Sequence record: OP889247.1
DNA length: 64,000 nucleotides
Strand: one strand, 5' to 3'
Shown here: positions 27,324 to 60,217 of the stretch, in pieces
Layout: every line of letters begins with the position of its first letter
Numbering within the stretch: position 1 is the first letter of the stretch
Made by a program: the position numbers and the translations under genes
Notes under the pieces: generated by a model
What the model saw: only the letters and a program-made list of their open reading frames with translations
What the model was told of the DNA's origin: nothing
Databases searched by the model: none

Positions 27324-27337
27324 CAATATGATGAATG

Positions 27338-27366
27338 ACCTCTACTCTCCATTGGAGAGTAGAGGT
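27338..27366. terminator. hairpin at convergent junction
   Basis: ACCTCTACTCTCCA-T-TGGAGAGTAGAGGT. Confidence 0.75.
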
Positions 27367-27388
27367 TTACTTTATGTTTGTTTATTTC

Positions 27389-28345
27389 TTACCAGTTAAC
27401 TTCTTTGATGTTGTCGTTAGTCATAACAGTGTCAAAGACACTTTGATCTTCGCTCAGTACGGCAATAGAAACACTACCAAAGATCTCTGCAATTTTACCA
27501 ATGGTCTTGTTGCAACTCTTGATGCAGTTAGCAGTGTGACTAGAAAGGTTAGCCAGATAGTTAGTTACTTTCTTGGAGTAACGATGGTCTTGCTCGTTCT
27601 CAGCTTTGCCTTCTGCAAGTTTCTTAGTTTGTTCGTTAGACTTCTCAAGAGCAGGAGTAACTTTAGCTTGCAAGGATTTGAAAGCAGAACGCAGTTCAGC
27701 GATCTTGGCACACAGAGCCGCCGCTTCAGTCAAAGATTTAACATCTGCTTCTACTTTCTTACCAACCAGCTTACCCATATCCTGATAAAGAGTGTTGATT
27801 TTACTAAGGTCAGAAGAGAAATCAGGGAAGTCTGCTTTGATTTTCTCAGCAGTTCCTTTGATATCTTTCATAAGCCCATCTTTATCGATCAAATAGACAT
27901 CGTTCATCTTACGAAGACCGACTGTATGGACAACTGTCTCTGGATCGAGCTTAGCAACGTGAGTTTTCAGTTTAGCTTCGGCTTTCTCACGTTCTTCTGG
28001 GGACATTGCAGCCAGAGCTTTATTAACCTTACCAGGGAGTTCATTAGCTGCCTTTACAGTTTTAGCTACCTGTTGATCTTGCTTAGCGCCAGCCGCTCCA
28101 AAGAAGAACTCTTTGACAGATTTGAGCCAAGATTTAATCATCTCGTAGAACTTGACAGCGCCATCTTTGATGGTCTGAACGAAACCTTCATTACCAGCGT
28201 ACTGATTAAAGGAAACGCCGTTCAAAGACAAGCAGGTACGAGTGTAAGCGGCGTCACCATCTTTAGCATTGATGTCGTTATCGAGTGATTCAAAACCAGC
28301 CAGCAGACTTTGGAAATGTTCTACATCAGAAACAAAAACGTTCAT
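27389..28345 (-). CDS. internal head/ejection protein (phiKZ_IP-like) with cleavable propeptide
   Basis: AGFES and AGNE|GFVQTIKDGAVKFYEMIKSWLKSVKEFF: xE-site followed by amphipathic helix typical of phiKZ internal head proteins. Confidence 0.75.
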   Translation of the reverse strand: MNVFVSDVEHFQSLLAGFESLDNDINAKDGDAAYTRTCLSLNGVSFNQYAGNEGFVQTIKDGAVKFYEMIKSWLKSVKEFFFGAAGAKQDQQVAKTVKAANELPGKVNKALAAMSPEEREKAEAKLKTHVAKLDPETVVHTVGLRKMNDVYLIDKDGLMKDIKGTAEKIKADFPDFSSDLSKINTLYQDMGKLVGKKVEADVKSLTEAAALCAKIAELRSAFKSLQAKVTPALEKSNEQTKKLAEGKAENEQDHRYSKKVTNYLANLSSHTANCIKSCNKTIGKIAEIFGSVSIAVLSEDQSVFDTVMTNDNIKEVNW

Positions 28346-28357
28346 AAATACAGTCCT

Positions 28358-30484
28358 TTAAAATACATCAGAAATAGAAGTACGGATAAGAGAAATACTT
28401 GGAACAGCTTCCACAACATCCAATGGAATATCTAACAAAGGATCCGTGGTAGGAATGTCCCAAATATATTCACCAGATTCCATCCCACCAATTGCAGTTG
28501 TGTTAACACCAAGTTCAGCAACACCTGGTATTTTACCACCACCAAGTAAAGCCTCTACCTGCTCCCTAGACCATTCCATGATATCAATTGATCTACTAGT
28601 GATGTTCTCTTCCTCACCAGTATCAAGATCAATTAGATAAACATAACACTTTTCATCCTGTCCTCTACGATGAACCCGAGCGATGGTCTGTGTCAATTCG
28701 TAGGATCTAAATGGGGAGTTCATTAAGATGATCTGGTTAGCCATTAACATTGGCTTACCTTCCCTCAGTGTTTGGAAGGTAGTGATCAATGGGTTGGTAT
28801 CTGGGTCATCGGTTAACTGTTCAATTACTTTATCAATCTCAGTACTGTTATTACCATACACGGAAACTGATTTTAAACCAACTTCTTTGAAGTAATCTTC
28901 CAACTCCTTAATAACTTCTACATAAGAAGTATAAACCAGAGTTTTCTTTTTAACACCTTCAATAAGTTTAGGTAAATTAGCATGACGAATGGTTTCCTTA
29001 ATGGCATTCATTCGGGCTTTACCTAACACATTACCAAGAGCTTCACCTCTGATCTTTAAACCAACATATTTAACAGCTGACTTAATGTGTCTAAAGTAAT
29101 GAAGATCTTCTCCTTTCAAATAGGACTCAATTTCCTTTTCAACCGAAGCACAGAACTTTGATTTATCTGCATCAGTAAAGTTATTGTATCCATTAGCTTG
29201 AAAGTAGTTAACATAGTCCACATAAGTCTTTACTCTAGCCTGAATAGATTGGTCACTCCACTTACGTTCTTTGAAATCATTAACGTAAATTAACCAATCT
29301 TCCTTATAAGTACTCATACGTTCTTTATAGAACCTAACACGTTCTGTGATATAGGTCAACATATCAGTACGGATGTTATTCAGGGTAAAGGCTTCAGCAC
29401 CTGGGAAGGAAACTTTAATTACCTCAGGCTCAGGAGGAGCTTCCATGGTTGTAATAGCCGGGATGGTGTATTTGATTCTACCTAATCTATGAGCAAGCAT
29501 CTCATTAAGGAACGTGTTATCTCTCCCATACATTTTCAAGAAGTTATCTCTGACATTCTTATCAAAGAACTTATCGATGATGGTAAACAAAGCGTAAGTT
29601 TCTTTACCTTGCGCTTTAATAGGAGTACCTGACATAAAGAGCACATCAGAGATATATGGGTGAGAACAGAAATCAATTAAACCTTTAGTTTGTTGAGAAC
29701 TGTGTTCATTGTAGTTATGGCATTCATCTACAATCACTTTGGCTGGAAGTTGACCATTCTTAGTAATGGTTTTAATAGCCAGTTCCCAACTCTCTGTGCG
29801 AATGGGTTCTTTATGAATAATAAAGATCTCAGCATCCACGTGGTTTAGGATGTTAGTTCCATCCAGAGAAGTCCAAACTTTAGGGGGTTTCTTATACACT
29901 TTATTGATTTCATTTACCCAAGGTGAATAGACCAACCCCTTTGGAACTACAATAAATAATTTACCTTTGGAGATCATTTTACTCCAAATCAAAGACGTCG
30001 GACTCTTTCCAGAACCAACTACAGCGTCTAGTAAGCACCCCTTAAGTTGGAAACCGTATTTAATCCGACTGTATTCTTCCAGGAAATCCCGTTGGTCAGG
30101 ATAAGGTGTTATGGTAAACTCTTTAAGAGCTTCGTCAACAGGATAACTAGGAAAAGTTTGGTAAGTTGTTTCCAACCATGTTTTGGTTTTGACTTCATCG
30201 TACAATTGTTTATAACGAAACAGACCGACGTAATAACGATCAACTGTACGTTTATTCTTTTGGTTAGTAAGATGATCTAGAATCCAAGCAAGTTCCACCA
30301 TAAAGAACTTGTGAATTTTAAATGATCTTGCATTAATCCTGGTAATAAGACGATTGAAAATAACACTTGTGCCGAAGTTATTTTTCAAGTCACTTTCAAA
30401 TGCCTTTGTATTAATACCCGTAACTACATAAAACGAACCTACTTGCTCTACCTTTGGGCTGAGTGTAAAGTAACCAGATAACAT
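28358..30484 (-). CDS. SNF2/SF2-type helicase
   Basis: LDAVVGSGKS (I), IVDECH (II), SGTP (III), QTIARVHRRGQ (VI). Confidence 0.9.
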   Translation of the reverse strand: MLSGYFTLSPKVEQVGSFYVVTGINTKAFESDLKNNFGTSVIFNRLITRINARSFKIHKFFMVELAWILDHLTNQKNKRTVDRYYVGLFRYKQLYDEVKTKTWLETTYQTFPSYPVDEALKEFTITPYPDQRDFLEEYSRIKYGFQLKGCLLDAVVGSGKSPTSLIWSKMISKGKLFIVVPKGLVYSPWVNEINKVYKKPPKVWTSLDGTNILNHVDAEIFIIHKEPIRTESWELAIKTITKNGQLPAKVIVDECHNYNEHSSQQTKGLIDFCSHPYISDVLFMSGTPIKAQGKETYALFTIIDKFFDKNVRDNFLKMYGRDNTFLNEMLAHRLGRIKYTIPAITTMEAPPEPEVIKVSFPGAEAFTLNNIRTDMLTYITERVRFYKERMSTYKEDWLIYVNDFKERKWSDQSIQARVKTYVDYVNYFQANGYNNFTDADKSKFCASVEKEIESYLKGEDLHYFRHIKSAVKYVGLKIRGEALGNVLGKARMNAIKETIRHANLPKLIEGVKKKTLVYTSYVEVIKELEDYFKEVGLKSVSVYGNNSTEIDKVIEQLTDDPDTNPLITTFQTLREGKPMLMANQIILMNSPFRSYELTQTIARVHRRGQDEKCYVYLIDLDTGEEENITSRSIDIMEWSREQVEALLGGGKIPGVAELGVNTTAIGGMESGEYIWDIPTTDPLLDIPLDVVEAVPSISLIRTSISDVF

Positions 30485-39262: not shown

Positions 39263-39317
39263 ACTACAGGTATATTATGTGAAAGTTTGGAACTATTCCG
39301 TTGTCTTGAGGTTACTC

Positions 39318-40685
39318 ATGAATAAACAGTTTTTAACGTTAGATAAACACCCACTTCGTCACGTGCTAATAAAATCTCTTCCGAAGAAACTAGAGTCTAT
39401 AAAGAAAGAATTTTACGACTCGGTTGAAACAGAAGAAAAGTTTATTGCTAGGTTTAAAACCTATTTTAACCACAAACAAAATACAGACATAACCAACCTA
39501 ACTTTATACGATAAAATTTTACTGTATAAGGCCGATCACCCTGATTATGTTTTTTGGACACCGTTAAAGCTAATTCGTAATGGCAACGAGGAAGAAGTTA
39601 AGGTATACGATAGTTACAGCATTAGCACCAATGGGGAAATTTACTCTCATTTAAACCAACTTATAATGAAGGTAAGAACTAAGAAAACTGGTTATAAAGA
39701 ATTATGCATTAAAATACTAACCAGGTCTGTTTTTATTTCACATCACCGTGCAATGATGTCAAGTTTTGGATTTGATATTAAACATCAACATAAATTAAAC
39801 ACATTAACGATAAATCATAAGAATGGTATAAAGATCTGTAATGACTTATCAAATTTAGAATGGATGACAACAGGTGATAACTCTAGAGATAGGTCTATAG
39901 TGATGGGTAAATTAGGTAAAAGATATGGGACTAGACCCATAAAGATTACCGCGTTAGAAGGTATAGAAGGTGTGGAACAAGGTACAGTCTTTTACTTAAG
40001 ACTCAGCACAGATGGGTATAAATACGGTTTAACCCCAGGAATAACCAATAAACCTTTAAACGGCACTGGTTCTTGTTATAATTGTAAACTTGAATACATA
40101 GACTACGAGGAATTACCAGAAGTCGTACAGGAATTACCACTGGAGTTATTATCGCATTTTGAAAAGAAAAGGGCGATGTTTAACGGGACGTTAAAATTAA
40201 AACTATTTCTAACTAAGGAGCTTTGTGGTTATAAAGCCGGAACCATATTTGTTGCCACTAAAGAAAAAATACTTAGTATGGGAGTAGGACACAGTTCTGT
40301 GGCTTCTGCTATCTCGGGAAGCAAAACCTTATTTGGATTTAAGTTTTCTTATCTAAACACTAATACCACTGTGGACTGGTTAGACCTTCCCGATTGCTTT
40401 AAGGAACATTTTGCTAAAGAAAATAAAAGAATGGATCTAATTAAAAGGAAATGGGCTTTAAGTTGCACAGTTGTGAAAGAGATAAACGGATATGAAATTG
40501 GTGAAACCTTTATAGAAACAGATTTGAAAAAACTATTAAGTCTTGGTGTAAGACCTAGTGTTATTTACGGTTCTAGCAAAAGAGGACAATGTTCAAATGG
40601 GTTAAGATTTAATAGAATATATTGTCCAACGCAAATTAATAACAAGCCAACAATACCTCTAGATTTATTAAAACTGATTTCATAG
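39318..40685 (+). mobile_element. free-standing HNH homing endonuclease with three C-terminal repeats
   Basis: SHHRAMMSSF...TINHKNGIKICNDLSNLEWMT...N (HNH_3-type); ATG 39318 after GAGG SD; ATA/AGA-rich codons unlike core genes. Confidence 0.85.
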
Positions 40686-43002: not shown

Positions 43003-46000
43003 TTAATTCATCCTCACCCCACTTTGTTGTTTAGCGAGACGATTGATACCTTCATTCAGAGTATCAACGGATGTGATCAACCTAGCCATTGCAGCTGTGT
43101 TGGCTTCATCGTTAACAGCCAGAGGTCCATCAGGTAACTTGAGTTCTACCGGAACTTCTTTGGTAGGTGTCTTCATTACACTAGACGGATTAACAGCAGG
43201 AGTATTAGTTGCTGTATTAGCTGGTTGTTGCGGAGCAGCAATACTCGGTGGAGGAGTAGGTGCTTTAGGTTTACTAGCAGGAGAAGCTGTAGGAGTACTA
43301 GTTGGTGAAACAGGTTTATTAGAAACCTTAGAAGTATCTGCTGCGTTCATCAAACTGTTGATGTCTTTCTTAGCATCTGGATTAACAGCTTTGTTACCGT
43401 CAATGTGATCAGGTGGAACATTACTATCTGGAACAGAAGGTAACTGTGCTTGTTCATTACTAATTTGAACAGCACCTTGTTCACCAGTATCAGGTACAGA
43501 GATATCACCACGGTTAAGACGATCCAGGTACTCTTGATAGTATTGTCTACGTTCATCAGAACCAGGAACAGGATTACCACCATTGATACCGCGCATAGCG
43601 GTTTCAAAATCACCTGTCTGGGCAATAGAACGCATCGCTTTACTATTAAGTAAGAATCGTACAGCAGACTCAGCCATTACATTAGGATCTTCAGACACGA
43701 TACGTGGATTAGATACAACATCAATCCCAGTCTCTTGTTTGAATTTCTCGTAGTTAGCTTTACCTGTTAACTGGAATAGTCCTCTACCACGATATAACCA
43801 ACCATCTTCCGGTTTAGTGTTACCAAGTGTTGGACCTTTAGGAGCTCTGCCATAAACATACATAGCACGTTCAGCAGGGGACAAAGCAGCAACTTTCTCA
43901 GCAGTAGCCATATCAGGAATATTTCTAAAGTACTTCTTCAAAGTAGGAGCAGACCAGTTGGTATTCTCTACTGTAGCTGAATAGTTACCGGTTTCCTTCT
44001 TAGCCATCGCCAGTGCAAGTGCCAACATCTTCTTATCAGTTACACCTGCTTTTAACAAGTGGTTTAATAAGAGTTGTTCACCTTGTGCAGGATCCATCTT
44101 GATCCCTTTATCATCACCTGCTAACTTCTGGAACTCTGGATTAAAGGTATCTGACCAACCAAGGTTAACATTACCACCTTGCAAGTTGTAGTTAGTACCG
44201 TATCCAAGACCATTGTTATTACGACCATCAGCAGTAAATGAATTACCAGTACCACCACCGTAAATACCAACATTACCAGCGGAGACATTACGGTTCTTAC
44301 CATACACTTTATCAAACAGTGCATTGGTATTAGCCTGAACTTGACTATAGTTGACCTTACTTCCACTTAATTTCTCATCGTAAGTAAGTGAACGTTCATC
44401 TTCTAACTCAGGTTCTTTCAATCTTGCTTTAGTAGCTTTAGCATCCAAAGACTTAAGATACTTCTCAACTCTATCAGGCCAGCTACCAGAATTGGAATTT
44501 TCAAATGGTGAAACTTTTACATCCCACACTGATACTTCTTCTTGCTGATAGATAACTCGAGTTTCTGACAAGAATCTAGCCAACTTAGCTTTGTTAGTAT
44601 CAGAGAGTGATCTCCAACCTTGCTTAGGTAGTTGATTACGAAGACGTTTCATTTCCTTAACGTATTGTTGCAATACAGGTAAGAAACGATTCTGGAACCA
44701 CAGATGCCAGTTAGTCTCGCCGTTAGTTGTTTCAATTCTAAATTGCGCTTTAAACAGATTAAATACCCTAGTAGGATTACCACTAAAGACCGCTTCTGTT
44801 CCAAGCGTATTAATCAGATCTTCACAATAACGTTCCAGTCTAAGCACAGCATCAACTCGCCAAGGCATATTGTCGATGTTACCATAAACACCTAAACGAA
44901 CCATAGTAAAAGCATCGATTGCTGTATTAGCGTCTTTATGCAAATCAGAGATATCGATTTCTCTTACAGCTTGTGGTGTTTGGAACTTGCGATCAACTTC
45001 TTCCTGTGCAAGTTTATTAGCTCGATCTCCATAACTATTGCTAAACCACCCCGCCAGTCCATCTGGTGTCTTTTCGTTTAATACTCGGTTACGACGTTCT
45101 ACATCTGTTTCTAGTTTGAACTCTTCTTCAGGAGTAGGGTATTTCTTACGAAGTTCTGACAGTAAAGAACTAACCAAGTTCTCAGTCATCACTCGATTAA
45201 GTATACCTTCCCTCGGATCTATCTGTACTTGTACTTCATAAGGGAATGGATCCAAAGTACCCATAGAAGTTCTCACACGTTCACAGAGTAGTGTAACTTC
45301 ATAACTCTCTTTACGATCAAACTCGTTGATGTCACCGTGTCTACCGATAGATACTGCTACAGCGTATAGCAAAAACACAGGTTTGAAGCGAGCATTAAAC
45401 CAAGTGTGAACTTGATCAAACGGAACACTATCTCCACCTTTAGCAAACTGTTGTAGAATCTGAGCAACAGGAGCACTTTGAGAGAAACTTGCTCTGTTAT
45501 TAGCGATAGCCAAATGAGGAATTAACGCTTGTTCCAGCTTAGAAACACGTTTAGCCAAATTACCGTCAATACTCTTAATGCCGTACTGAGCATAACGAAT
45601 ACGACGTTGCAGTGAATCGGGAATCTCTTTAGCACTAACTCCACCAGTCCCATCAATGTAAGCTTGTGCTTCACGACGGTCAGTAAAGAAGGTTCCATCA
45701 GGAGCCCAGAATACACCCTTGTTCTCGATAAAATCAGTAGCAGCTTTTGGTAACAGGAATTCCTTAGCGGTTTTCAAGGCAAGTGTAGGTAAGAAGAAAT
45801 CAGAAGCTGTATCAACAACTTTCTCCATAGTAGTTAACTTTGGACCATTGTCATCTTTACCATCTTCATACACATCTCCATCAGTGGGTTCAGCTTCACT
45901 ACCAAAAGCATCAGCCGCGTACATACCGCCACCTACTACAGCACCAGTGCCTAGCAAAGCAGCCAACATCTTACCTCGACCACCCAACTTACTAAGCACT

Positions 46001-49000
46001 CCACCGATCTTACCTCTCATCCCTCCTCTACCAGTGCCACCCAATGCGTCACCTAAACCACTTCCTGCTGTTTTAGCCATAGTAGCTTTAGTTAGAGCGG
46101 TGAAACCCCACTTCATTAATTTGAAGATGGGAGAAGCGACTCCTAACACACCTGAGAACAACATCGTACCAATAGAAGCTAAACGTTTTCCAGAGTTAGC
46201 CAGAGAACCCATGATTAAACCACCTAAGGTTCCAATAGGGTTCTTAATAAGACGCATAGCAAAATCACCCATACCTCCCATTAAGCTAAAGAGTTTACCG
46301 AAGATACCTTGCTTTTCGGTTTTCTCTCCCTCTTTAGGTTCTTTCATTCCTTCAGCAATATCGATGATGGAATCCTGAACCTTCTCTTGCTTCTCTGCTT
46401 TAGCTTGTCTGATCTTATCTTCTAAAGAGTTCAGTCTTAGCCCTTTAGCGATAGGTGAACCAATTGGATCACTTTCTCCGTCAAAGTTATCAGGAATATC
46501 AATACCAAACTTCTGGGAGAGTATGGCATAAATACGATCTAAACGACGTTCTACACCACGGTTACTACTTTGTCCTGATTTACCTATCCCAGAACCTTCT
46601 GTATCGCCTTGTGGACGATTGTAACCGAACTTCCCTAGGATGTTATCTAAACCTGATCTAGCGAGTCCTGCTGCTGTTCCAGCTAATCCTGAAGCAGCAC
46701 TACCCACCGCTCTTACTTTTTGACCAGTTGCAGTAATAAGACCTTGATCAAATTCTGCTTGGGAGATAACTTCGTTACCTTCACTGTCGTAGACAGGGCC
46801 ATTAATCTCATTCCATCCCCAAATAGGCTTAATAGACCCAGTACTGTCCTCAATGGAGTACTCACCTTCTTTGAACTTAATAGCTCTCAGTCTAGGTGTC
46901 TTCTCACCTTTTACAAATACGTCTTGTTGGTAAATGAGGTTCTTACCCATTTCCATAACCGACTTAATGCGTGTTAAGGGATCAATGAAGTTATAAGCTC
47001 CCACTGCCGCATCTTTGATCTTGGTAATTCCTGATAGAACTACAGCTCGTCCGTCAGCGCCAAAGATCTTACCACCCAACTCTTTAATGGTAATGGTAAC
47101 TTTATTACCAGCATCAAACAAAGGACCTTTGATATCACGCCAAGTTTTTATCACACGACGTTTTACAGCATCGTAATAATCGCCAGCTTTAAGTTTAGCG
47201 GAAGTTAAGATCTTGTTTCCGTTCTCATCGAGGATGTCTTCATCATCAGACGGTTCGTCACCTACACCTTCTGCATAATCCGTTTTACCCCAATGTTGAA
47301 CTAAAGCTCCTAGCGCAATACCACCCGCACCAGCTGCCGCTGCAAGAATAGGATTTTGGATAAAGTGTGAACTTACACCACCTAAAATAGAACCAAGGAT
47401 CAATGGTTGATTTTGCATAACCATTTCAAACCCTTTTCCGAGAATATTAGTCGGAAGGATTTTCTTGAGTCTATTTACTACATCAAAGTTGTAACGATCG
47501 GCTTGACGTTCTTCAGTTTGCGACTTAGCTTGCTTACTAAAGAGTTTCCCATCTTTTACAATACTGAGTAATTCAGTAAAGAGAAGATCCATATTAGATG
47601 TTGAAGTAGCTATCTTATCGATGTTTGAAACAACTTCACCGGTATGAGTGTCAAAATAAGCCTGAGGTCCACTGGAACGTTCTGTATCAACTTTGGAAGT
47701 ATTATCAATCAATCTACCAAGCTGTGCTGACAAATCGCTTATAGAACTGTTTAGTTCGTTAAACGTATTGTTAGTTGACGAAGATCCAGTTGGTGACTTA
47801 GGTACTATAAACCCGCCTTTGCCATCACTTACTGGTTTCTTAGATGTATTATCAAACATCCCCTTTAGCTGCGGGTTATTTGGGTTCTCCATGAACTGTC
47901 CCAGTCTTTCATGGAAAATGTTCATGTTAACTTTCTCTACCCCAGCTTCAGTGTAGATAACACCAAGATCTCTAAGGAGTTGTTCATTACCGGTAGAACG
48001 TAGCATATCGATGCGTTCTGCTACATTGGGGAAAAGATCCTTCATGTTAGCAGCAGTAGCGGAAGCTACGTTAAGACGCTCGTTACCCTCATTACTACGC
48101 ATGTCAGTCATGCGTTTGAGTTTATCAAAACCCTTAGCGGACTTAAACTCAGAAACATCTTGATCATTAAGACCAAAGTGACGTTTCATTACAGCGTGAA
48201 TTTCTTTTTGATGAGAACCAGATACGTTAGGGATATCACCAAGATAATAGAATGGGTTAAACCCTTTCTCTTGATCAACATCTTTAGCGATCTGCTGTGC
48301 AAGAGCTTTCCTAGCACCAGGACTAAGAGTACGTTCTGGATCTAATCCATCGACCATTTCCAAAGCAGCTTGAGCATAACGACTAAAGTCACCGTAAGGC
48401 ATTAAATCGGCTTTAACAGAAATGCGTTTTTCTGAATCAGTTTGGAACTGACCACGCATATAGTTATAACTAACAGCTTCTGCATCATTACTTCCAGTTC
48501 TGATATTTTCAAGAATCTGGTTGGTTCTAGATATGAGTCCAGGGATAACTTCATTAAGGGTAATGTTATTGGTCTCTTTCCAGATACCTGGGTTATTGAG
48601 ATCTTTCACATTGCGCTTATTGAGCGTATATTGAGTCCCACGAGATTTAGTAATCTCAGACATGAAACTGTTAACAGAGGCTTTAGCTTTGTTGCTGGCC
48701 GTGTTCTTAGCAACCCAAATAGCCTTTGGAATCGGCTTCTTACCTGGAGGAAGTTGATCTAAGTAATCTTGATAATCAAGATACTGCATCTCATCCATAG
48801 CTTCGTAATCTTCAGCAAGGTAGTTAATTAACCCAACACCAGAAGTAGAAGCGTAAGAAGCTTTATTACCAAAGTTAGTCAGTTTACCAAACATCTCTTG
48901 GAACTGTTTAGCTTCTTTGGGATTTTTAGCTGCTAACTTATTAATCCAATCTTTACCTTTACCACGTTCAAAGAAGTAAGGAATATTAGAAACAAACATA

Positions 49001-50046: not shown

Positions 50047-50071
50047 ACATTCCCTCACTTAGGAAATAGCG

Positions 50072-51691
50072 ATGAGTAGACAACCTACTAACTTTACGCT
50101 GCTTGATCCTAAAACGTTTCCAATAGAACTCATGTCACCCGTGACAGTAGCTGATTCGTTTGAAGGTCAAACCACTAACTTGCACGAAGACGGACTCTAC
50201 TCGACCAGGATCTTTGGTCGAGTAGGTACTGATGAACGAGATAAAACTGAATCTTACATTAATACCTTATTACCTATTTTTAATCCCACGTATTTTAAAG
50301 CATTAGTGCAGTTAAAATCACTTTACTTAGATATAGTAAAGGGTAAGACATATGCTGTATGGGATGAGACAGAACGTGATTTCATAAAATCTAACGTCCT
50401 GGAAGGTGATACAGGATTTGCGTTTTTTATGACTCATTTTGGTGAATTAGATCCAAAACCAAATCAGTCTTTTAAACGAACTCAGAAGATCACGCTGGTT
50501 AATAGTTTCCGTGATCGAGCTTTGAATAAACACATTCCAGTTATTCCAGCGGGGATCCGAGACATTGAAATAGGTCCTACTGGATTAGTTACTGAAAACG
50601 AGATAAACGATCTTTATCGTAAATTGATTTTCCGAACTAAGTCACTAACTACGAAAAACCCTGATCCACTTGATCCAGTTTATGACAACATTCACTGGGG
50701 GATGCAGGAGTCTTTGAATAACATTGACCAACATCTCTTTGAGTTACAGGAAGGTAAACGAGGATTCATGCAACGTCGAATGAGTCGACGTTCTATCCAC
50801 TCCGCAACCCGTAACGTAATCGTCTCTCGTAAAGTCTCTGTAGAGAATATGGACGATAATACTACTGGTGATCCTAACTCTACTTTTATTGGGATGTACC
50901 AAGCACTACTTGGTTATAACCTAGTTGCGACCCATGAACTTCTTAACGGTTTCTTATCTGAAGTATTTACTCCTGGTTTGGATAAAGCACGTTTAGTAGA
51001 ACCTAAGAGTTTAGAGAGCGCTTACGTAGATGTGGATCCTTACACAGTAGATAAGTTTACTTCCGCTGATGGGATTGGTAAACTCTTTAATGGTTTTAGT
51101 GATCCTAACGTTCGTAACCGTCCTATTAAGGTAGCAGGTCATTACTTAGGTCTACTTTATGATGATGGTAAAAACGTTTGTTTAGTTCACGATGTAAATG
51201 ATCTAGGTGAAGGAATGGATAAGAAGTTTCTTCATCCTGTTACCTATATGCAATTCTTTTATATCCAGACAGTAAAAGCGATTGAAAAGAAGATGTTACA
51301 AATTACTCGTTACCCAATTACTGGGATAGGTTCGATTGTACCTACACGAGTGTTTGTTCTTCCAACTACAGCCACATCAGAATCAAGAACATTGATTGAC
51401 ATTGATGGTAGTAAGTTGGATAGTTTTCACTTCTTTCCAGTGTGGACTAAAAATCCCAGTTTCTTTGATGGGATGAGTATTAGTAACGTACGTTTAGCAG
51501 CTGCTGGTGGAGATTTTGATGGAGATCAGCTCTCTGCAAACTCAATACAGGCTAAAGATTCAGTAGAAGAAATTGAAACTTTGTTTGGTAAACGTATATT
51601 CTATATTTCTGGAGCAGGTGACTTTCTATACGACCCTGTACAGGAACCACACGCATTCCTTTTACGTTCATTGACCAATGGATTATCGTAA
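50072..51691 (+). CDS. rpoC: virion RNA polymerase beta'-like subunit with catalytic DxDGD (phiKZ gp180-like)
   Basis: GLYSTRIFG, PVIPAGIRD, RYP, AAAGGDFDGDQ. Confidence 0.88.
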   Translation: MSRQPTNFTLLDPKTFPIELMSPVTVADSFEGQTTNLHEDGLYSTRIFGRVGTDERDKTESYINTLLPIFNPTYFKALVQLKSLYLDIVKGKTYAVWDETERDFIKSNVLEGDTGFAFFMTHFGELDPKPNQSFKRTQKITLVNSFRDRALNKHIPVIPAGIRDIEIGPTGLVTENEINDLYRKLIFRTKSLTTKNPDPLDPVYDNIHWGMQESLNNIDQHLFELQEGKRGFMQRRMSRRSIHSATRNVIVSRKVSVENMDDNTTGDPNSTFIGMYQALLGYNLVATHELLNGFLSEVFTPGLDKARLVEPKSLESAYVDVDPYTVDKFTSADGIGKLFNGFSDPNVRNRPIKVAGHYLGLLYDDGKNVCLVHDVNDLGEGMDKKFLHPVTYMQFFYIQTVKAIEKKMLQITRYPITGIGSIVPTRVFVLPTTATSESRTLIDIDGSKLDSFHFFPVWTKNPSFFDGMSISNVRLAAAGGDFDGDQLSANSIQAKDSVEEIETLFGKRIFYISGAGDFLYDPVQEPHAFLLRSLTNGLS

Positions 51692-54600
51692 TGCAAGAAC
51701 ATCCGGTAAACTTTGACGAACTTAGCGGACTAGAGGGATTGTTATACTCTCAGTTCGTTAAACTACACGGTACGCGAGAACGCGCTAATGATGTAGTGAA
51801 TCCACGATATCAAGTCGTCGGTGATATCATGTTACCTCGTAATAGTCTCATTCATTACCAGGGGAACATTCCTGGTGAATTGGGACCTAGTAACACCGCT
51901 GCTTTCATTAGTAACTACGACAAACGTATTAACATCTTTTTTAATGTTAATTACGAAACTCCTCTGGGAACAACCAAGATTGTTCCTATTCAGTTGACTA
52001 AGTTGATCAAGCAATATGAAGGTGGACATTACCTTTATACTCGCGCTCGTCAATACCAAACTGTAATTCACAAAGAAGGTGAGCTACTAGTTAACAACTT
52101 AGCTATTGGTAAGATTCCTGTTCAGTATCGCAGACAAACTGTATTCACTCCATTCCAACGTTCTTACAATGAACTCTATACATTAATGGAATCTGTGAAT
52201 GAGTTTAGTCAATATGATATTCATCAGTTTGTAGAGTTTAAACTTCCTCGCTCGTTCCCCTCTTATAAAACGTTAGAGCTTAAATTTGAAAAGTATAAAC
52301 GTTTCTTTAATAATGAAGGTGTTATTGAGAAATACGAGAAGGAAGCTTTAAAAGAGTTCCAAGCTGAGGAATCTTTCTGGCTATTAGATCTATTCGGTAT
52401 TCTGATTGGTTTTGATAATAAACAATACAGTTTGTTTAATCGATTGAATGATCGAGCTAGAAGTCAACTAGAATTGATCTTTAGTTATAACGGAGTGTGT
52501 TGGATCGCTAATCTTCAAACACTGATCAATTTGATTGGGTATGATGATAAACCAGAAGACACTTCTCCCCGTCCTATTAAGTTTAACTACTTCAAGCGTT
52601 TCTACCTTGCTTTGATTTCTCTGGTGAGTCCGCTTTCTGAAGAAGTTGTGGAAGAGAGTTATGAGCAACCAGAAGAAACCACCAAAGAAGAGGTGGTGGC
52701 AGATCGATCGGAAAAAGGAGGGAGAGGATCTGGACGAGAGTCTGAAGAAAAGTCCCCTATGGTACCTAATACTACTCCTGGTGGCTTGGCTGATCTTTAT
52801 GCCAGCAGTAAGGGAACTACTCCTGCGGTGTCTGATACCTCAGGAACAAAAGGAGAGAAAACTCCTGAAGGAACACTTCCTGGGAGTTCCGAATCCGAGA
52901 ACAACCCAGTTCCTACTGAAACCACTGAGAAATCCCCGGAAGAAGAATGGGGTGCTGATATAGACGATAGTGTCTTTGAACGTGCCAGCATCGAACAAGC
53001 CACTATTGTTAACTCTGAAGAAGCTTATTCGCCAGTTAGTACAATCAATCGTATTCTGGAACGTAAAGCAGCCAGAGGTCAGTTAACAACAAAAGAGAAA
53101 GAGTATTACACTAACGCAAGTGTTTCTTATTTAGACATTGAGTTTGGTGGTCATTTACTTTCAGAGATTGTTGATATCAAACCTGAAGACTTGGTGATGA
53201 AACCTAAAACGTTCGCACCTAAGTCAGAAGCTGTTACAGATGAGTCTGTATTGCGTTCTAGAAGCATGGAACTCACTAAGGGATATGTAGAACAGTTCCT
53301 TGAACGAGATATCATGGGTGCGGTTCTTGCTGTTCAGAACGGTGGTACTGCTTTACTGGATCTGAATCGTGAAACCATTATCACCGCTGATTCCAAGTAC
53401 GATGTTTATAAGATGAAACTCCAACCTGTGGATAATGGGAATCAGTCTACCAGACAGTTCCGTTTACCTAAGGTAGCTTCTGACGGTAGCTTTACTATTA
53501 ACGGGGTTAAGTCTTACGCTCAGTTAGTACGTATGGATCTTCCGGTTAGAAAGATCAATCCAGTTAAGGTTGCCATTAGTTCTTATTACGATAAGAAACT
53601 GATGATTGAACGTTCTGCTTATAAAGTAAACGATTACAATCATTGGCTTAAGACTAATATCATCCAGAAGAGTTATGAAGACAAATCCATTACAGTTAAA
53701 TTAGGTTCATTCAAATCTGAACTTAAAGAGGTGTGTTGGTATTACTCAGTACTAGCTTCTCGCTTTAAAGAGATTACTGTTGGTGGTTTGGAATTTAACT
53801 TTGATACTGAATCCATCTTGGTAAAACACCCTAAATGGAAGAAGTATTGTAAAGGTGATAGTTGGGTCATTGGTGATGAACACGGAGTTCCTGTACTAAT
53901 CGATAACACTGGTTTGGTAATGATCGACGGTGTAGAGAAAGGTTACATTGAAGAGATCCTTCGCTTACCTATGGCTAAAGCTCCAGTCCCCACTGCCACT
54001 GCGAACATTAATGGATATAAGTTCCCTGTAGTGGTGGTACTCGCTTACTGGATTGGTTTTAGTGAACTAGTGAAACGTCTCAAACCTACCCATCGTGTTG
54101 TTGAGCCAGGTACTCGTCCTATGCTTAATGCTAACGAGTATATTGTTCAGTTTGCTGATGAGCGTTTGATTCTTGATCGTCGAGATGGATTGAGTACTCT
54201 GATCTTCTCAGGACTGAGAAAGCTAAATGGCTTAGCCAACTTCTCCAAAGCTCAATTGGATGATCCTAACGTATGGTTCAGTTTGATTAATGATAGTCGT
54301 GTTAAACCATCTCACTTTAAAGAGATGGATTTGATTTACGATATGTTCATTGATCCTATCACTGCTCGTGAATTGGAACGTCGTGGTTATCCTCTCATTA
54401 TGGATAAACTGATTATCCGTGCCGTAGAGATGCTTCTTAATAACGAAGCAGAACACGAAGTGGAAATTGCTGAACAGCGTTTGGTTGGTTTCGAGAGATT
54501 CCCTGGTCACGTTTATCGTGAACTAGTTAAGTCTACCAGACAGTTTAGGAACAAGCCCAATACTGGTAAGAAGACCTTTGACCTAAACCCGGAAGCTATC

Positions 54601-56058
54601 ATGATGAATATCCTGACTGATAGTAGTATGCAACCAGTTGAGGAAGTCAATCCAGCTCACCAGATCAAGCAACAGGAAGAAGTCACCTTTGGAGGAACCT
54701 TTGGTCGAAGTGATCAAGCGATGGTGCGACGTACTCGTGGTCAATTACCAAGTTATGCAGGGATTATCTCTGAAGCCGGTAAGGACTCAGGTAAAGTAGG
54801 ATTTATCTCTTATCTAACTTCTGATGCCAAGATTGTTGACTACGCTGGTAACGTGGATGTAACCCAAGAAACCACCAATGCTGGCCGTGGTTCTGTAACG
54901 GCTAACCTACTTTATGGTACAACACGGGATGATAGCAAACGCACTATGTTCTCAGGCGTTCAGCTAAGTCAGTGGATGGCTACTGATAGTTATGTTGCTA
55001 ACCCCATTAGAACTCCTTCTGATAGTGTAGTAGCTTATCGCAACTCGGAACTTTATTGTTCTTACGCTAAAGAAATGGGGATAATTACAGCTATCACTGC
55101 TGACGGTATGACTGTCAAGTACGATAACGGTAGTGAAGAGAAATTCCCACTTGGCTATGAAGTAGGTAAAGGCGCTGGTGAGTATCACAAACATCTTAAA
55201 ATCACCGATATGAAAGTTGGTGATAAAGTTGATAAAGGTGATGTACTTGCTTGGGATGATTGTTTCTACACTCGGGATTTAACTAATCCAAAACGGATCG
55301 TTATTAAGCTTGGGACAATGGCACGTATTGCATTGGTAGAAGATCAATTCACATTTGAAGACTCCATTGGCATTACCCAGAAGTATGCGGATTTGAATAC
55401 CACCCCTTACTTGAAAAACAATGCGTTTAAGATCGGTTATGAACAAGCTATTAAACTCTATGTTAAGGTAGGTGACAAGGTTGAGTACGATCAAGTACTA
55501 GCTGATGTGATGGATCCTTCTTCTGCTATGTTCGAAGAGGAAGGTACTAACTCTATTGCTGGTTTAGATCGTCTTGGTATTAAACAGATCAAAGCTAAGC
55601 AAGCTGGAGTAATTACCAAGATCGACGTTATTTATAATGGCGATCTTGATACAGCTGAAGAGTCTTTGAAAGCGTTTATTCAAGAGCAGGATAAGCTACG
55701 TGCCAAGAAAGCTAAGTTCCGGGAACTTGCTGCTGATAATGGTAACGTGGGTGGTAACACTTCAGTAGGTAAATCTAAGGTTTATCCTAACACTGCTTCT
55801 GTTACCATTACCATTGAGAGTAAACTCACTACCACCACTGCTGATAAGTTTGTAGCAGGTAATCAGATGAAAGGTACAGTAGGTTTCATTTACCCAGATC
55901 CTATTTATACTGTCGATGGTCGGGAAGTTGATGTTAAGTTCTCTTTGAAGTCTTTGCTTAACCGAATGGTTTTGAGTCTTCGTGATAAACTGGTAGCTAA
56001 TGAATTAAACCATGTTTACACTAGTCGCATGATGAAGAAATATGGGAGATATGAATAA
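51691..56058 (+). CDS. rpoB: virion RNA polymerase beta-like subunit (phiKZ gp178-like)
   Basis: 1455 aa; G.GEYH, FEDSIGI, ADKFVAGNQMKGT (cf. GDKxxxRHGNKG); TAATG coupling to beta' gene. Confidence 0.85.
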   Translation: MQEHPVNFDELSGLEGLLYSQFVKLHGTRERANDVVNPRYQVVGDIMLPRNSLIHYQGNIPGELGPSNTAAFISNYDKRINIFFNVNYETPLGTTKIVPIQLTKLIKQYEGGHYLYTRARQYQTVIHKEGELLVNNLAIGKIPVQYRRQTVFTPFQRSYNELYTLMESVNEFSQYDIHQFVEFKLPRSFPSYKTLELKFEKYKRFFNNEGVIEKYEKEALKEFQAEESFWLLDLFGILIGFDNKQYSLFNRLNDRARSQLELIFSYNGVCWIANLQTLINLIGYDDKPEDTSPRPIKFNYFKRFYLALISLVSPLSEEVVEESYEQPEETTKEEVVADRSEKGGRGSGRESEEKSPMVPNTTPGGLADLYASSKGTTPAVSDTSGTKGEKTPEGTLPGSSESENNPVPTETTEKSPEEEWGADIDDSVFERASIEQATIVNSEEAYSPVSTINRILERKAARGQLTTKEKEYYTNASVSYLDIEFGGHLLSEIVDIKPEDLVMKPKTFAPKSEAVTDESVLRSRSMELTKGYVEQFLERDIMGAVLAVQNGGTALLDLNRETIITADSKYDVYKMKLQPVDNGNQSTRQFRLPKVASDGSFTINGVKSYAQLVRMDLPVRKINPVKVAISSYYDKKLMIERSAYKVNDYNHWLKTNIIQKSYEDKSITVKLGSFKSELKEVCWYYSVLASRFKEITVGGLEFNFDTESILVKHPKWKKYCKGDSWVIGDEHGVPVLIDNTGLVMIDGVEKGYIEEILRLPMAKAPVPTATANINGYKFPVVVVLAYWIGFSELVKRLKPTHRVVEPGTRPMLNANEYIVQFADERLILDRRDGLSTLIFSGLRKLNGLANFSKAQLDDPNVWFSLINDSRVKPSHFKEMDLIYDMFIDPITARELERRGYPLIMDKLIIRAVEMLLNNEAEHEVEIAEQRLVGFERFPGHVYRELVKSTRQFRNKPNTGKKTFDLNPEAIMMNILTDSSMQPVEEVNPAHQIKQQEEVTFGGTFGRSDQAMVRRTRGQLPSYAGIISEAGKDSGKVGFISYLTSDAKIVDYAGNVDVTQETTNAGRGSVTANLLYGTTRDDSKRTMFSGVQLSQWMATDSYVANPIRTPSDSVVAYRNSELYCSYAKEMGIITAITADGMTVKYDNGSEEKFPLGYEVGKGAGEYHKHLKITDMKVGDKVDKGDVLAWDDCFYTRDLTNPKRIVIKLGTMARIALVEDQFTFEDSIGITQKYADLNTTPYLKNNAFKIGYEQAIKLYVKVGDKVEYDQVLADVMDPSSAMFEEEGTNSIAGLDRLGIKQIKAKQAGVITKIDVIYNGDLDTAEESLKAFIQEQDKLRAKKAKFRELAADNGNVGGNTSVGKSKVYPNTASVTITIESKLTTTTADKFVAGNQMKGTVGFIYPDPIYTVDGREVDVKFSLKSLLNRMVLSLRDKLVANELNHVYTSRMMKKYGRYE

Positions 56059-56929: not shown

Positions 56930-56938
56930 GGTATTCTC

Positions 56939-57103
56939 ATGGAAAACACTGTCGACAACATCATTACGTTGTCTAATATGTACGAGGTCGTTTCACAGAC
57001 CTTGAAGAAAGTAGGTTACGAGTTCCAAGCTCCCTTGAGCGAAGTTGAGGAACAAGAAGTAATCTCCCGTCAAATCAAATCAGCTGTATTGGGAGAAGAA
57101 TAA
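56939..57103 (+). CDS. 54-aa hypothetical protein (absent from ORF track)
   Basis: MENTVDNIITLSNMYEVVSQTLKKVGYEFQAPLSEVEEQEVISRQIKSAVLGEE; AAGGT SD; fills gap with TAATG coupling. Confidence 0.7.
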   Translation: MENTVDNIITLSNMYEVVSQTLKKVGYEFQAPLSEVEEQEVISRQIKSAVLGEE

Positions 57104-58623
57104 TGATTCCTCAAAGCACTATTCTAGTCGTTACTCCTATTGCAATGGAAGCAGACCAGAAAGCCACTGTATTGTCAGAAGGTAGTTCTGACATCATCAA
57201 GGGCCTGAACGACACCACAGCGTCTCTGGGTGGGTTCACTCCTGACAACATTGCAACTGAACTCCCTGATTACACCAAACTTGTTCCTGAACACACTGAA
57301 GTAATGGAAATGGTTTCTACTAAGCTGGCAGAAATCATTCGTAGTTCTCTGTACGTAATTAGTAAATGCGTTAAACCTATTTTGAAAGAAGCGGATAACG
57401 AAATTGCTCGTAATCTGAATGTTCAGAATGTGGTCGATCTCTCCTTTGATTACCTGAATGTCAAAATGGTTAACATGGAACCGGATTTCCTTAACTCTCC
57501 GTTCTGTCCAACCGAACTTCCTAATACCTTGAAGGAAACTTCCAAAGTAGCACTTAATGAACTACTTAAAGGTAATTGGGCTGATGACAAAACTGGTGAA
57601 GAACTGATCGATCTGATCCGTGTCGATTCTGGTGTTCTTTATACTTTCTTTGAAAGTCCTGATGAAGTACTGGAAGTGTATCGCCGGATCTTTGTTAATA
57701 AAGCTTGGCATGACTTCTTTAGTAGCACCGGTATTCAAAATGGTGTTGTTGATGTCATGCATCAAGATAGTTACCATATTGGTAAATTCCGTGCTATTGT
57801 TATTGCCAACTTGTTGGTAAATAAACTGTGTGCTATGGAAGACCCAATGGAAGGTGTAACTGGTGTTAGTCTGGTTGACTATCGCGGTTCTCTTGCTATG
57901 ACTCGTGATATCCTGTCTGGCTCACTAGTACGTTTCCGTAACATTTGGCTGGGTCAGGCTGCTAGTGGGATTGTTATCGTTGATGGCGACGTCAAGTACA
58001 CAGAAGCTAACTGGGGTTTACTCAACGGCACTAAACTTCTTACTGGTAACGTTACTGTCGGTTACAATAACAAAGTCTTGGGTCTCTTTAGTGAAGCTTC
58101 CAGTTACAGTCTGTCTGAATACGTTCTTGGTTATCTGTATGCTAAAGAACGTGGGTATCGTGTTAAAGATATCATGACCGACGCTAATGTAATTGAAGAT
58201 GCATTGCGCGAATACCAGCAAGATCTTACTACTCGTCTTTATGACAACCTTCAGAAAGTCTCTAAGGAATCTTTCATTACTGCGATTAAGCGTATGGAGA
58301 TGCATGAGAACTTTGAAAGTGTTGTTAACACTATGGATGAAAGCGTTCCTAAGGGTGTTCGCATTATTAGCAAACTTCAAGAAGCGATGAACCTTAACGA
58401 TTTCTTCGGTAATCCGATGATGATCGAGGACATCTGTAAAGGTAAACGTTCCCTGCTTCAAACTGGTATGGCTAAAGAACTCTGTCTGGTATTTGGTTCA
58501 GAGATTGCAGCTGAAATCCTGTTGGAGAATGCTAAAGGCGAACCAGGCCCAGTAGAACATCAGCGTAAAGTTCTCACTGGTGCGATTATCAAAGCGATTA
58601 TCAAACGGATCTATACCAAGTGA
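57103..58623 (+). CDS. virion head protein (phiKZ gp177-like)
   Basis: 506 aa; synteny between vRNAP beta and protease; possible AME|A propeptide site. Confidence 0.6.
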   Translation: MIPQSTILVVTPIAMEADQKATVLSEGSSDIIKGLNDTTASLGGFTPDNIATELPDYTKLVPEHTEVMEMVSTKLAEIIRSSLYVISKCVKPILKEADNEIARNLNVQNVVDLSFDYLNVKMVNMEPDFLNSPFCPTELPNTLKETSKVALNELLKGNWADDKTGEELIDLIRVDSGVLYTFFESPDEVLEVYRRIFVNKAWHDFFSSTGIQNGVVDVMHQDSYHIGKFRAIVIANLLVNKLCAMEDPMEGVTGVSLVDYRGSLAMTRDILSGSLVRFRNIWLGQAASGIVIVDGDVKYTEANWGLLNGTKLLTGNVTVGYNNKVLGLFSEASSYSLSEYVLGYLYAKERGYRVKDIMTDANVIEDALREYQQDLTTRLYDNLQKVSKESFITAIKRMEMHENFESVVNTMDESVPKGVRIISKLQEAMNLNDFFGNPMMIEDICKGKRSLLQTGMAKELCLVFGSEIAAEILLENAKGEPGPVEHQRKVLTGAIIKAIIKRIYTK

Positions 58624-59366
58624 TCGAATTCGATAAGCTGAAGAAAGACACAGGGCGGATTAATTCCGCCCTTAAAGTCATGCCTGATAATACAGTCGTT
58701 GCTCTTAAGAAGATGACGTGTTACATTCCTAAGCGCTTCGAACAATCTGGTTTGGCTGAAGTTGGTGATTCGGTAAATACAATTATGGCAGTTGGGGTGG
58801 TGGTTGATGACTACTACTCTTGCTTTGGTTCTCTGACACGGTTTAGCATGAAACCCGGCGATACTTCTGAGGAAGTTATTAAAGGTGAACGTTACTATGT
58901 CATGCATTTTGAACCGGGTGATGTTGTTATTGAAAACATCTTTGTTCCGCAGGACGCTAACCTGATCTATTACTTCTATTTGGAATTCATCAAATACGCT
59001 CGTTATCCATGGTATATGGATGAAAGCGTGCTATTGAATATCTTTGATGAAAGTTCTTATTTTGCAGGTAAGAAAGTAGGTAGTTCTGCTCAAGTACTCA
59101 GAGTGTTGTTTTCGTTAACAATGCGAGATCCTGTCAACTTGGATATTCCGTTTCGTTATTCCCCGCAGTTTAAAGATCTCTCCGTGAAACCTCGGATCAT
59201 CGGTATTAACAACCCGGGTCAACTACTTAACAGTACATTTAGTAGATTGTCTTCAGGTTATATGTCTGATAACATTGTCAGTGGTATTCTTAACCCAGAT
59301 ACTCAGATGACAACGTTGGAAGAGGTGATCCGTGGTCTTCCTGAAGAGTATGGAGAGTTACAATGA
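58620..59366 (+). CDS. vRNAP-associated subunit (phiKZ gp176/SPN3US gp244-like)
   Basis: 248 aa immediately upstream of protease; assigned by synteny. Confidence 0.55.
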   Translation: MIEFDKLKKDTGRINSALKVMPDNTVVALKKMTCYIPKRFEQSGLAEVGDSVNTIMAVGVVVDDYYSCFGSLTRFSMKPGDTSEEVIKGERYYVMHFEPGDVVIENIFVPQDANLIYYFYLEFIKYARYPWYMDESVLLNIFDESSYFAGKKVGSSAQVLRVLFSLTMRDPVNLDIPFRYSPQFKDLSVKPRIIGINNPGQLLNSTFSRLSSGYMSDNIVSGILNPDTQMTTLEEVIRGLPEEYGELQ

Positions 59367-60217
59367 GTGAAATTAGCTTTGGGAATATCGTTCTAGCTAA
59401 TAGTGGTAAAAAAGGTATTCTCAAACCAAACTCAGATGGCATTTACCGTTTGAATGCCGGTGGGTTTAATATCCCTAATCACGCTGGTATTGTTTATCCT
59501 GCTAACAAATACATACGTGAACAGATGGAAGCTAATAGCGACCTTAACCGTCGTGTTAGTATGGGTTATTGCTTGATGGAACGCGAACATCCGCAACCTT
59601 TCTTTTATGTAGAAGAGAATGGTGTTCGTTATCGTAAAGCAATGACATCAGTTCTCGAGTGGATTAATCGTCTTCGTAGTTATGACGACGATAATGTTTG
59701 TGGTTTAATTACAAAGGTAATCTTCCGTCCAGAAAACCCTAATAATCTTTCAGCTCCTATTTGGAATGAAATTGATTGTAAACCATTTGGGAAACGGGCA
59801 GAAGAGTTTAGAGAATCTTTAGAAACTCCTGAACATAACACAGCTGTAAGTATTCGTACTCAGATTTCTCCATTTAAGCCTGGTGAAACTCGTAAAGAAG
59901 TTGAATACTGGACAGGATATGACTGGGTAAAGGAACCTGGGTTCTTACATGCTAATAAGCACATGACAGCTGGTTGTGAGTCCATGCTTTCTGATTTTAA
60001 TCTGGGGATGGATAACGTCATTAAGTTCAAAGCTTCTGATGTTATTGAACAGATTGATAACCAACTAGCTCTTGCTGCTAATAGTGACTTTGAACTCCAA
60101 CGTGTAGGTGGTATGGAATCACTTAACATGATGAAGGGTATGGTAGAAGCTGTTAAACGCAATTACAGGTCTGGTGACACAGCACGTATTGGTGTTTCCT
60201 TTAGCGACGTATTCTAA
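59363..60217 (+). CDS. prohead protease (phiKZ gp175-like)
   Basis: EREHP catalytic His region, VSIRT catalytic Ser region, C-terminal AGCES and GGMES self-cleavage-type sites. Confidence 0.85.
   Translation: MSEISFGNIVLANSGKKGILKPNSDGIYRLNAGGFNIPNHAGIVYPANKYIREQMEANSDLNRRVSMGYCLMEREHPQPFFYVEENGVRYRKAMTSVLEWINRLRSYDDDNVCGLITKVIFRPENPNNLSAPIWNEIDCKPFGKRAEEFRESLETPEHNTAVSIRTQISPFKPGETRKEVEYWTGYDWVKEPGFLHANKHMTAGCESMLSDFNLGMDNVIKFKASDVIEQIDNQLALAANSDFELQRVGGMESLNMMKGMVEAVKRNYRSGDTARIGVSFSDVF

Follow-up and report, generated by a model that had tools for sequence, protein, structure and literature searches.

The final 32-39 residues of two proteins from unrelated families in the Aeromonas phage AVP1, an SNF2-family helicase and the prohead (head maturation) protease, share a G-x-E site and a short motif at the very end of the chain, and on balance we think it likely that both stretches are C-terminal propeptides that can be cleaved off and act as a common signal for entry into the prohead. 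Both genes lie within the window analysed here, a stretch of 64,000 nt that corresponds to positions 62001-126000 of the AVP1 record with its orientation unchanged; all coordinates below are those of the window unless the record is named. AVP1, a jumbo phage with a genome of 234 kb, is placed in the genus Ferozepurvirus, and its relatives OBP, N1M2, EL, phiKZ and RAY belong to the phiKZ-like (Chimalliviridae), nucleus-forming group.

Layout of the shared tail

A preliminary description of this DNA, made from the letters alone, had ascribed to both proteins a tripartite tail composed of GGMES, VEAV and a final S-[IF]-S-D-V-F. Translation of 28358-28489 on the minus strand does yield the 43 residues and stop codon that it quoted, at the end of the 708-aa open reading frame (ORF) of the helicase, and the protease ORF (59363..60217, plus strand) likewise ends as quoted, with GGMES beginning at 60107. 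The first and last of the three islands proved to be conserved among orthologues while the VEAV island did not, and judged by these comparisons the tail is bipartite, not tripartite. Its layout is a G-x-E site, a variable spacer and a short terminal motif that can be written as a small or hydroxyl residue, any residue, D or S, an aliphatic residue, an aromatic residue and the end of the chain. The G-x-E site is placed 32-39 residues ahead of the C-terminus in both AVP1 proteins.

In the helicase, the folded body comprises residues 1-647 (28544..30484, minus strand), with a mean AlphaFold predicted local distance difference test score (pLDDT) of 82.5 and a last confident helix at 635-647. The predicted prohead-protease site, identified from the sequence and the ortholog columns, is G666-G667-M668-E669 / S670 (28475..28489, minus strand), and it is followed by the predicted C-terminal propeptide of residues 670-708 (28361..28477, minus strand). 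The terminal motif defined by the ortholog columns, S703-I-S-D-V-F708, is encoded by 28361..28378 with the stop codon at 28358-28360. In the protease, invariant columns mark the predicted autocleavage site G249-G250-M251-E252 / S253 (60107..60121, plus strand), while model and alignment together delimit a predicted propeptide of residues 253-284 (60119..60214). Alignment columns define its terminal motif, S279-F-S-D-V-F284 (60197..60214, stop codon 60215-60217). The VEAV stretches, V691-V694 of the helicase (28403..28414, minus strand) and V261-V264 of the protease (60143..60154, plus strand), fall outside the conserved signal. Among helicases VEAV was found only in AVP1, PS1 and pAEv1810, with CF8 reading VEPV and other genera showing nothing similar, and proteases that are 89-96% identical to that of AVP1 read otherwise at these four positions.

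The spacer forms a helix in the protease as opposed to a disordered acidic stretch in the helicase. AlphaFold models the helicase confidently up to residue 647 and as disordered at 649-699, where pLDDT is below 50. For the protease it predicts a confident catalytic core, a disordered linker at 205-219 and helices flanking the G-M-E site; within the propeptide a helix (251-267) and a short strand (273-276) are followed by eight final residues with pLDDT below 50. Neither terminal motif is docked back on its own protein in these models, and both C-termini are predicted to be unstructured and exposed.

A six-frame scan of the window found GGMES at two places only, the helicase and protease tails, and the pattern [ST]x[ST]D[VIL]F-stop was found only at the same two. 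The preliminary description had proposed a scan of all C-termini; in the whole AVP1 genome, scanned as six separate pieces, 2 of 300 ORFs of at least 100 aa end in [DS][ILVM]F, and these are again the helicase and the protease. As it had also stated, the two tails use different codons, with synonymous differences at two of five codons in the first island and four of six in the last. Because the synonymous codons differ, the match is at the protein level with no recent DNA copy, and recent copying or gene conversion within AVP1 was ruled out on this ground.

Identity of the two proteins

The helicase gene, AVP1_0104 (28358..30484, minus strand; called as an ORF, by Pfam and as phrog_62), encodes a 708-aa protein that is 100% identical to the AVP1 and ACP1 copies. 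It matches the Pfam domains SNF2-rel_dom, ResIII and Helicase_C (PF00176, PF04851, PF00271), and a Foldseek search with its model retrieved the Ino80, ISWI, Mot1 and CSB ATPases at E-values of 1e-14 to 1e-17. In the Walker A and DExH-box motifs, residues G157, G159, K160, D253 and E254 are invariant in the ortholog alignment and H256 is present in at least 90% of sequences. AVP1_0104 is an SNF2-family ATPase/helicase by Pfam, PHROG and fold. Searches with tblastn recovered OBP gp263 (58.8% over 99% of the length), KTN4_244 (about 30%) and RAY gp131 (28%) as orthologues, and genes for a ribonuclease, an internal head protein, UvsX and the virion RNA polymerase are kept as neighbours in every locus compared. 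Sequence similarity and neighbourhood thus identify AVP1_0104 as the orthologue of the virion-associated helicases OBP gp263, phiKZ gp203 (KTN4_244) and RAY gp131. Many helicase orthologues are longer by some 350 residues and carry intein or homing-endonuclease domains (PF14528, PF05203), as in CF8 (1064 aa); the AVP1 copy is without an intein.

The protease gene (59363..60217, plus strand; phrog_3014) encodes 284 aa of the MEROPS/Pfam family S80. Its product matches Peptidase_S80 (PF20034) over residues 6-253 at 7.1e-67 and 225 bits, against a cut-off of 23.4. Residues H76, S163 and D187 are invariant among 83 sequences and are candidate counterparts of the published SPN3US gp245 triad. The top solved-structure match of the protease model is T4 gp21 (5jbl), with a probability of 0.99 and a weak E-value of 0.02. 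By its sequence family this protein is an S80 prohead protease of the phiKZ gp175 type. Helicase and protease lie on opposite strands with their tails about 31.6 kb apart and belong to different families by Pfam, as initially described, and across the related loci the protease gene is about 30-42 kb from the helicase gene.

Conservation in orthologues

Protein searches returned 120 helicases and 107 proteases, which gave 103 and 106 distinct tails, respectively; column shares were taken from alignments of 62 helicases and 83 proteases. The preliminary description would have been overturned by a tail lacking conservation in orthologues, and instead the G-x-E site and the terminal motif are kept in both families. 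Both islands persist down to approximately 36-39% identity in helicases and proteases alike. In eleven related phages that hold both genes in one syntenic locus, G-x-E and a terminal x-D/S-aliphatic-F are kept in both proteins. All but two of the 103 helicase tails and all but one of the 106 protease tails have F among the final three residues. Relative to this F, the F-2 column is nearly the same in the two families, with D at 65% in one and 66% in the other and S at 23% and 21%, F-1 is aliphatic in both with rare exceptions, and F-5 is mainly S or T.

Among proteases G250, E252 and F284 are invariant (100%), and residue 253 is A (51%) or S (45%). Toward the end of the chain, position 283 is I, V or L in 95%, position 282 is D in 60%, S in 24% and G in 12%, and S279 is found in 61%. 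Helicase G667 and E669 are each conserved at 89% inside an otherwise variable, disordered stretch. At the helicase terminus, position 708 is F in 97% and W in 3%, 707 is L, I, M or V in 98%, 706 is D in 71% and S in 21%, and 703 is S or T in 66%. The distance from E to F is tight in proteases (median 32, range 14-36); in helicases it spans 14-72 with a median of 28, and the length and sequence of the propeptide vary among orthologues. The helicase G-x-E is predicted from its sequence to be a processing site, fitting the S/A/G-x-E rule of S80 proteases (PMC5694885).

Covariation of the two tails

The endings of helicase and protease change together between deep clades. In Miami both proteins end in LDLF, in one metagenomic clade the helicase ends in DLFR and the protease in DIFR, in a second clade the respective ends are SMFR and DIFR, and on one metagenomic contig they are MSLF and MGLF. 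KTN4, of the phiKZ species, has a helicase ending in PAYMRF and a protease ending in PGFMR, a phiKZ-type end of the form P-x-[FY]-M-R that is common to both tails. In RAY the ends are AFSW for the helicase and HLRW for the protease, and in RP12 they are KLSW and WSNW. Counted as pairs of last residues (helicase, protease), 22 are F,F, two each are R,R, W,W and F,R, and one is W,F.

Scored over the last eight residues with BLOSUM62 in 29 genomes, same-genome pairs averaged 12.93 as compared with 9.66 +/- 0.73 after random re-pairing, and the observed score was matched in 3 of 100,000 trials; this test takes genomes as independent, ignoring phylogeny, and metagenomic helicases and proteases were paired on the assumption that contigs of identical length are one genome. 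With 20 clade representatives the observed score was reached in 1 of 100,000 re-pairings. In the 44-kb RAY locus the helicase and the protease are the only ORFs ending in W, and in the 50-kb KTN4 locus they are the only matches to the scanned end patterns, the phiKZ-type end included.

Packaging and processing in related phages

The expectation that proteases of this type cleave after x-x-E and trim their own C-terminus is borne out by published work: the cleavage point of S80 proteases lies behind the Glu of an S/A/G-x-E or A-x-E motif, and the C-terminal propeptide is taken off by the enzyme itself (PMC5694885, PMC10052503, PMC9026906). C-terminal autocleavage has been established by experiment for phiKZ gp175, 201phi2-1 gp268 and SPN3US gp245 (PMC9026906, PMC5694885, PMC10052503). 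When the SPN3US protease is shortened by the final 26 of the 64 residues that make up its propeptide, it retains activity in vitro and is absent from proheads, and the authors of that study proposed that the propeptide is a targeting element to the prohead core (PMC7411985). The preliminary description knew of no such import signal; this was overstated, given the earlier proposal for the protease propeptide (PMC7411985) and the T4 capsid targeting sequence, which has the same logic.

A packaged helicase had also been suggested. Orthologous helicases are indeed reported in virions (bioRxiv 10.1101/2025.11.23.690004; bioRxiv 10.1101/2023.02.24.529968; PMC10643120), and hence this part is not new; these reports concern relatives, and a proteome of AVP1 itself was not found. 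RAY gp131 co-localises with capsids and was detected in virions (bioRxiv 10.1101/2023.02.24.529968), PhiPA3 gp233 was found at virion bouquets (PMC10643120), and the record of KTN4_244 annotates it as a 'structural protein'. No report of a tail shared by helicase and protease, or of their covariation, was found in the searchable literature. What is new, as far as that literature goes, is that a cargo enzyme bears the protease's own C-terminal signal in the form of a definable, co-varying motif.

A probable shared prohead-entry signal and its alternatives

If the tails are a common entry signal, the exposed terminal motif would dock, during assembly of the prohead core, at a single site on some head component encoded by the phage. 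Candidates for this component are the portal, a protein of the core or scaffold, and the major capsid protein with its propeptide region. Docking would bring the protease in, and the SNF2 helicase would enter by the same route. After closure of the shell, the active protease would cleave both its own chain and the helicase behind the Glu of the site; the propeptides would be released and lost, and the mature helicase (residues 1-669) would be freed within the head. It could then stay with the DNA and be delivered to the next cell alongside the virion RNA polymerase. The genomic context, with the helicase gene adjoining that of an internal head protein, is in keeping with this reading. The cleavable C-terminal zip code of the preliminary description therefore retains its conserved site and motif, the covariation, the exposed position and the SPN3US truncation, all of which support it well though indirectly, and loses VEAV as a component.

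Salmonella phages of the SPN3US type have a similar protease end (SLSLFS), and no helicase match was obtained for them at 1e-20. Because these phages keep the protease tail without a detectable helicase orthologue, the signal would be primarily that of the protease; it was probably the protease's own tail first and was gained by the helicase later.

Several observations weigh against a shared entry signal. Taken alone, the two AVP1 tails do not align significantly (gapped local alignment score of 29, reached by 43 of 5000 shuffles), and when local alignment was run against all other AVP1 ORF ends two unrelated ORFs (41-43) outranked the protease (29). Plain local alignment was dropped as evidence for kinship of the tails, since unrelated ends score above the protease, and because it is insignificant the case for a shared tail rests on C-terminal anchoring, ortholog conservation and covariation. 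The [GAS]-x-E pattern is short and frequent by chance in 60 residues, and backing for the helicase site comes solely from its 89% column. One or two residues follow F in approximately 20-40% of family members, which means that the aromatic residue need not bear a free carboxylate. Within the OBP/AVP1-like group fine-scale covariation is lacking (12.38 for same-genome pairs vs 12.51 re-paired), and some same-genome pairs disagree: one contig has a helicase ending in W and a protease ending in F, and the pairs of EL and KTN4 differ by one terminal residue. All other known substrates of these proteases, eight of them in SPN3US, lose N-terminal, not C-terminal, propeptides (PMC10052503). The phiKZ helicase gp203 is reported to be proteolytically processed, and the trimmed end could be either one. 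Both the cut at E669 in the AVP1 helicase and the role of its tail in packaging are predictions.

The alternative that survives best, though we think it unlikely, is that the protease itself binds the helicase tail as a decoy substrate, in its active-site cleft and at an exosite for the terminal motif. The helicase would then ride in on the protease and make no use of the protease's own docking site. The helicase tail does bear a plausible cleavage site for that protease, and covariation would also be expected if the protease catalytic domain read the tail in trans, for example in oligomers. However, the AlphaFold model of the protease does not show its terminal motif docked on the catalytic domain, the last eight residues instead having pLDDT below 50, and a ride on the protease gives no reason for the helicase to share the final residues of the tail besides the cleavage site. 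Prohead entry of the SPN3US protease moreover depends on its tail, a result that points toward a third partner (PMC7411985).

Somewhat less probable again, and in our judgement improbable, is coincidence, i.e. shared descent or convergence without a common partner, with separate roles such as zymogen control in the protease and contact with DNA or RNA polymerase in the helicase. The shortness of the motif, the insignificant plain alignment, the unrelated spacers (helix vs disordered acidic stretch) and the lack of fine-scale covariation within the OBP-like group would all be accommodated. Against coincidence, the last five positions are near-identical in column make-up across two unrelated families, rare states (terminal W, added R, phiKZ-type ending) switch in parallel, and per genome or locus scanned the motif is found on these two genes only.

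We consider it very improbable that the tail is a quality-control or folding signal, whether as a chaperonin-recruiting tag or as a C-terminal degron through which a Clp-type or other protease would clear unassembled, possibly harmful enzyme from the cytoplasm. Hydrophobic C-termini that lie exposed typically act as degrons, and genes for a ClpP-like subunit and a GroEL-like chaperonin are located close to the helicase gene in AVP1. Work cited in PMC10052503 reports that a propeptide of the T4 capsid protein directs that protein to GroEL. Yet the tail follows the phage clade and not the host, a degron needs no precisely placed prohead-protease site upstream, and the truncated SPN3US protease is missing from proheads though active in vitro (PMC7411985). 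This explanation and coincidence are disfavoured mainly because the W, added-R and phiKZ-type switches run parallel in the two proteins.

Two other ideas were set aside: a likeness to the C-terminal tip of bacterial SSB, as the protease shares the motif and many members extend past F, and an import signal for the phage nucleus, which was rejected since proheads and protease are cytoplasmic or membrane-associated (PMC7411985) and GFP-tagged orthologous helicases are seen at capsids and virion bouquets (PMC10643120; bioRxiv 10.1101/2023.02.24.529968).

Building on the shared entry signal, one may go further and see in the tail a portable, co-evolving packaging tag for one docking site at which protease and helicase compete, a proposal that we put forward tentatively. 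If true, no short linear motif for loading an enzyme into the head of a jumbo phage would have been defined before it, the clade endings (F, F with added R, W, phiKZ type) would reflect corresponding changes in the receptor, and the proteins AVP1_0130 and AVP1_0153, described below, could be uncleaved users of the same site.

Neighbouring genes and other proteins with similar ends

Directly downstream of the helicase gene lies AVP1_0103 (27389..28345, minus strand; 318 aa), assigned by a partial ortholog match and synteny. Its first 80 residues match OBP_262, annotated as 'internal head protein' (39%, 6e-14), N1M2 gp207 (virion structural) and EL gp165, and its position next to the helicase is syntenic in all loci. 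Residues 17-20 read G-F-E-S, and from these matches AVP1_0103 is likely to be an internal head protein whose short N-terminal propeptide ends in G-F-E19 / S. With similarity confined to the first 80 residues, it resembles a rapidly evolving internal head protein that has kept its short propeptide. On the other strand, an ORF of equal length (27335..28288) overlaps AVP1_0103 and is probably spurious.

The protease is the final gene of a tightly packed run at 50072-60217 (plus strand), which begins with virion RNA polymerase subunits (50072..51691 and 51691..56058), a 295-aa gene and a short ORF. Two 'virion structural protein' genes (57103..58623 and 58620..59366) follow, with 4-base overlaps with each other and with the protease. 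The gene order of this run is the same in OBP, EL, Miami, KTN4 and RAY. An HNH endonuclease gene, AVP1_0116 (39279-40685, plus strand), is flanked on either side by a conserved virion gene in AVP1 and PS1 and is absent from the corresponding place in CF8, OBP and N1M2. In PS1, CF8, ZPAH34 and EL the annotation divides the virion RNA polymerase genes into more pieces, or shorter ones, than in AVP1, and EL has an HNH endonuclease gene between two such pieces, which suggests mobile insertions in the virion RNA polymerase module. A 2351-aa ORF (43003-50058, minus strand) is conserved beside the virion RNA polymerase genes in all loci, and its annotation differs from record to record: endolysin, chitinase, tail fiber or structural peptidoglycan hydrolase.

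A looser end pattern also picks out AVP1_0153 (ending in SDIFY), AVP1_0030 and tubulin in AVP1. AVP1_0153 (204 aa; AVP1 record 153266-153880, outside the window) has no PHROG family and no G-x-E upstream; its orthologues in CF8 and N1M2 end in D-[IV]-F-x and that of OBP does not. AVP1_0130 surfaced via its CF8 and Miami orthologues when the related loci were scanned for ends. It is a 144-aa protein encoded from 63811-64000 of the window onward (AVP1 record 125811-126245), five genes downstream of the protease, and it ends in KLFD, with DLFK in CF8 and Miami, so that an L-F-x end is invariant across three clades. AVP1_0130 may also use the same docking site, without being cleaved, or its end may be a chance match. 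As further carriers of the tail both proteins are leads only, having no conserved G-x-E and no known link to the virion.

Comparison with known systems

The closest precedent is the C-terminal propeptide of S80 proteases such as phiKZ gp175, 201phi2-1 gp268 and SPN3US gp245; the AVP1 protease is of the same family and carries its propeptide behind x-x-E. In the literature, as far as searched, that propeptide is a feature of the protease alone, with no terminal motif and no second carrier described. The roles of head propeptides in phiKZ-like phages still need study (PMC10052503).

The same logic is found in the capsid targeting sequence of T4, a short propeptide on IPI-III and Alt that directs them to the prohead core and is cut after Glu, the cargo being ejected (PMC9026906, PMC7411985). 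The T4 sequence differs in being N-terminal, about 10 residues long and of other sequence, whereas the AVP1 tail is C-terminal and common to the protease, and membership is not claimed.

In herpesviruses the maturational protease, which is of the same fold class, and the scaffold have a common C-terminal capsid-binding tail that is cleaved by the protease to release the contents. There, however, the sharing arises from nested in-frame genes and the second protein is a scaffold, not an enzyme cargo; a fold search with the AVP1 protease model listed T4 gp21 but no herpesvirus protease among its 50 best matches. Encapsulin cargo-loading peptides are short C-terminal peptides on unrelated enzymes that dock inside a shell of the HK97 fold, and in HK97 itself the C-terminal end of the protease mediates encapsidation. 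The encapsulin peptides differ in that they are not cleaved off and their shells are non-viral.

Phages of the phiKZ type must sort some fifty head proteins, ejected enzymes included, into the prohead, and a six-residue motif together with a cleavage site offers a handle on this process. The natural variants (F, W, added R, phiKZ type) could guide a search for the receptor by covariation and structure prediction. The shared tail ties a packaged SNF2 helicase to the assembly pathway of the protease, and in doing so extends the parallel to the common tail of the herpesvirus protease and scaffold.

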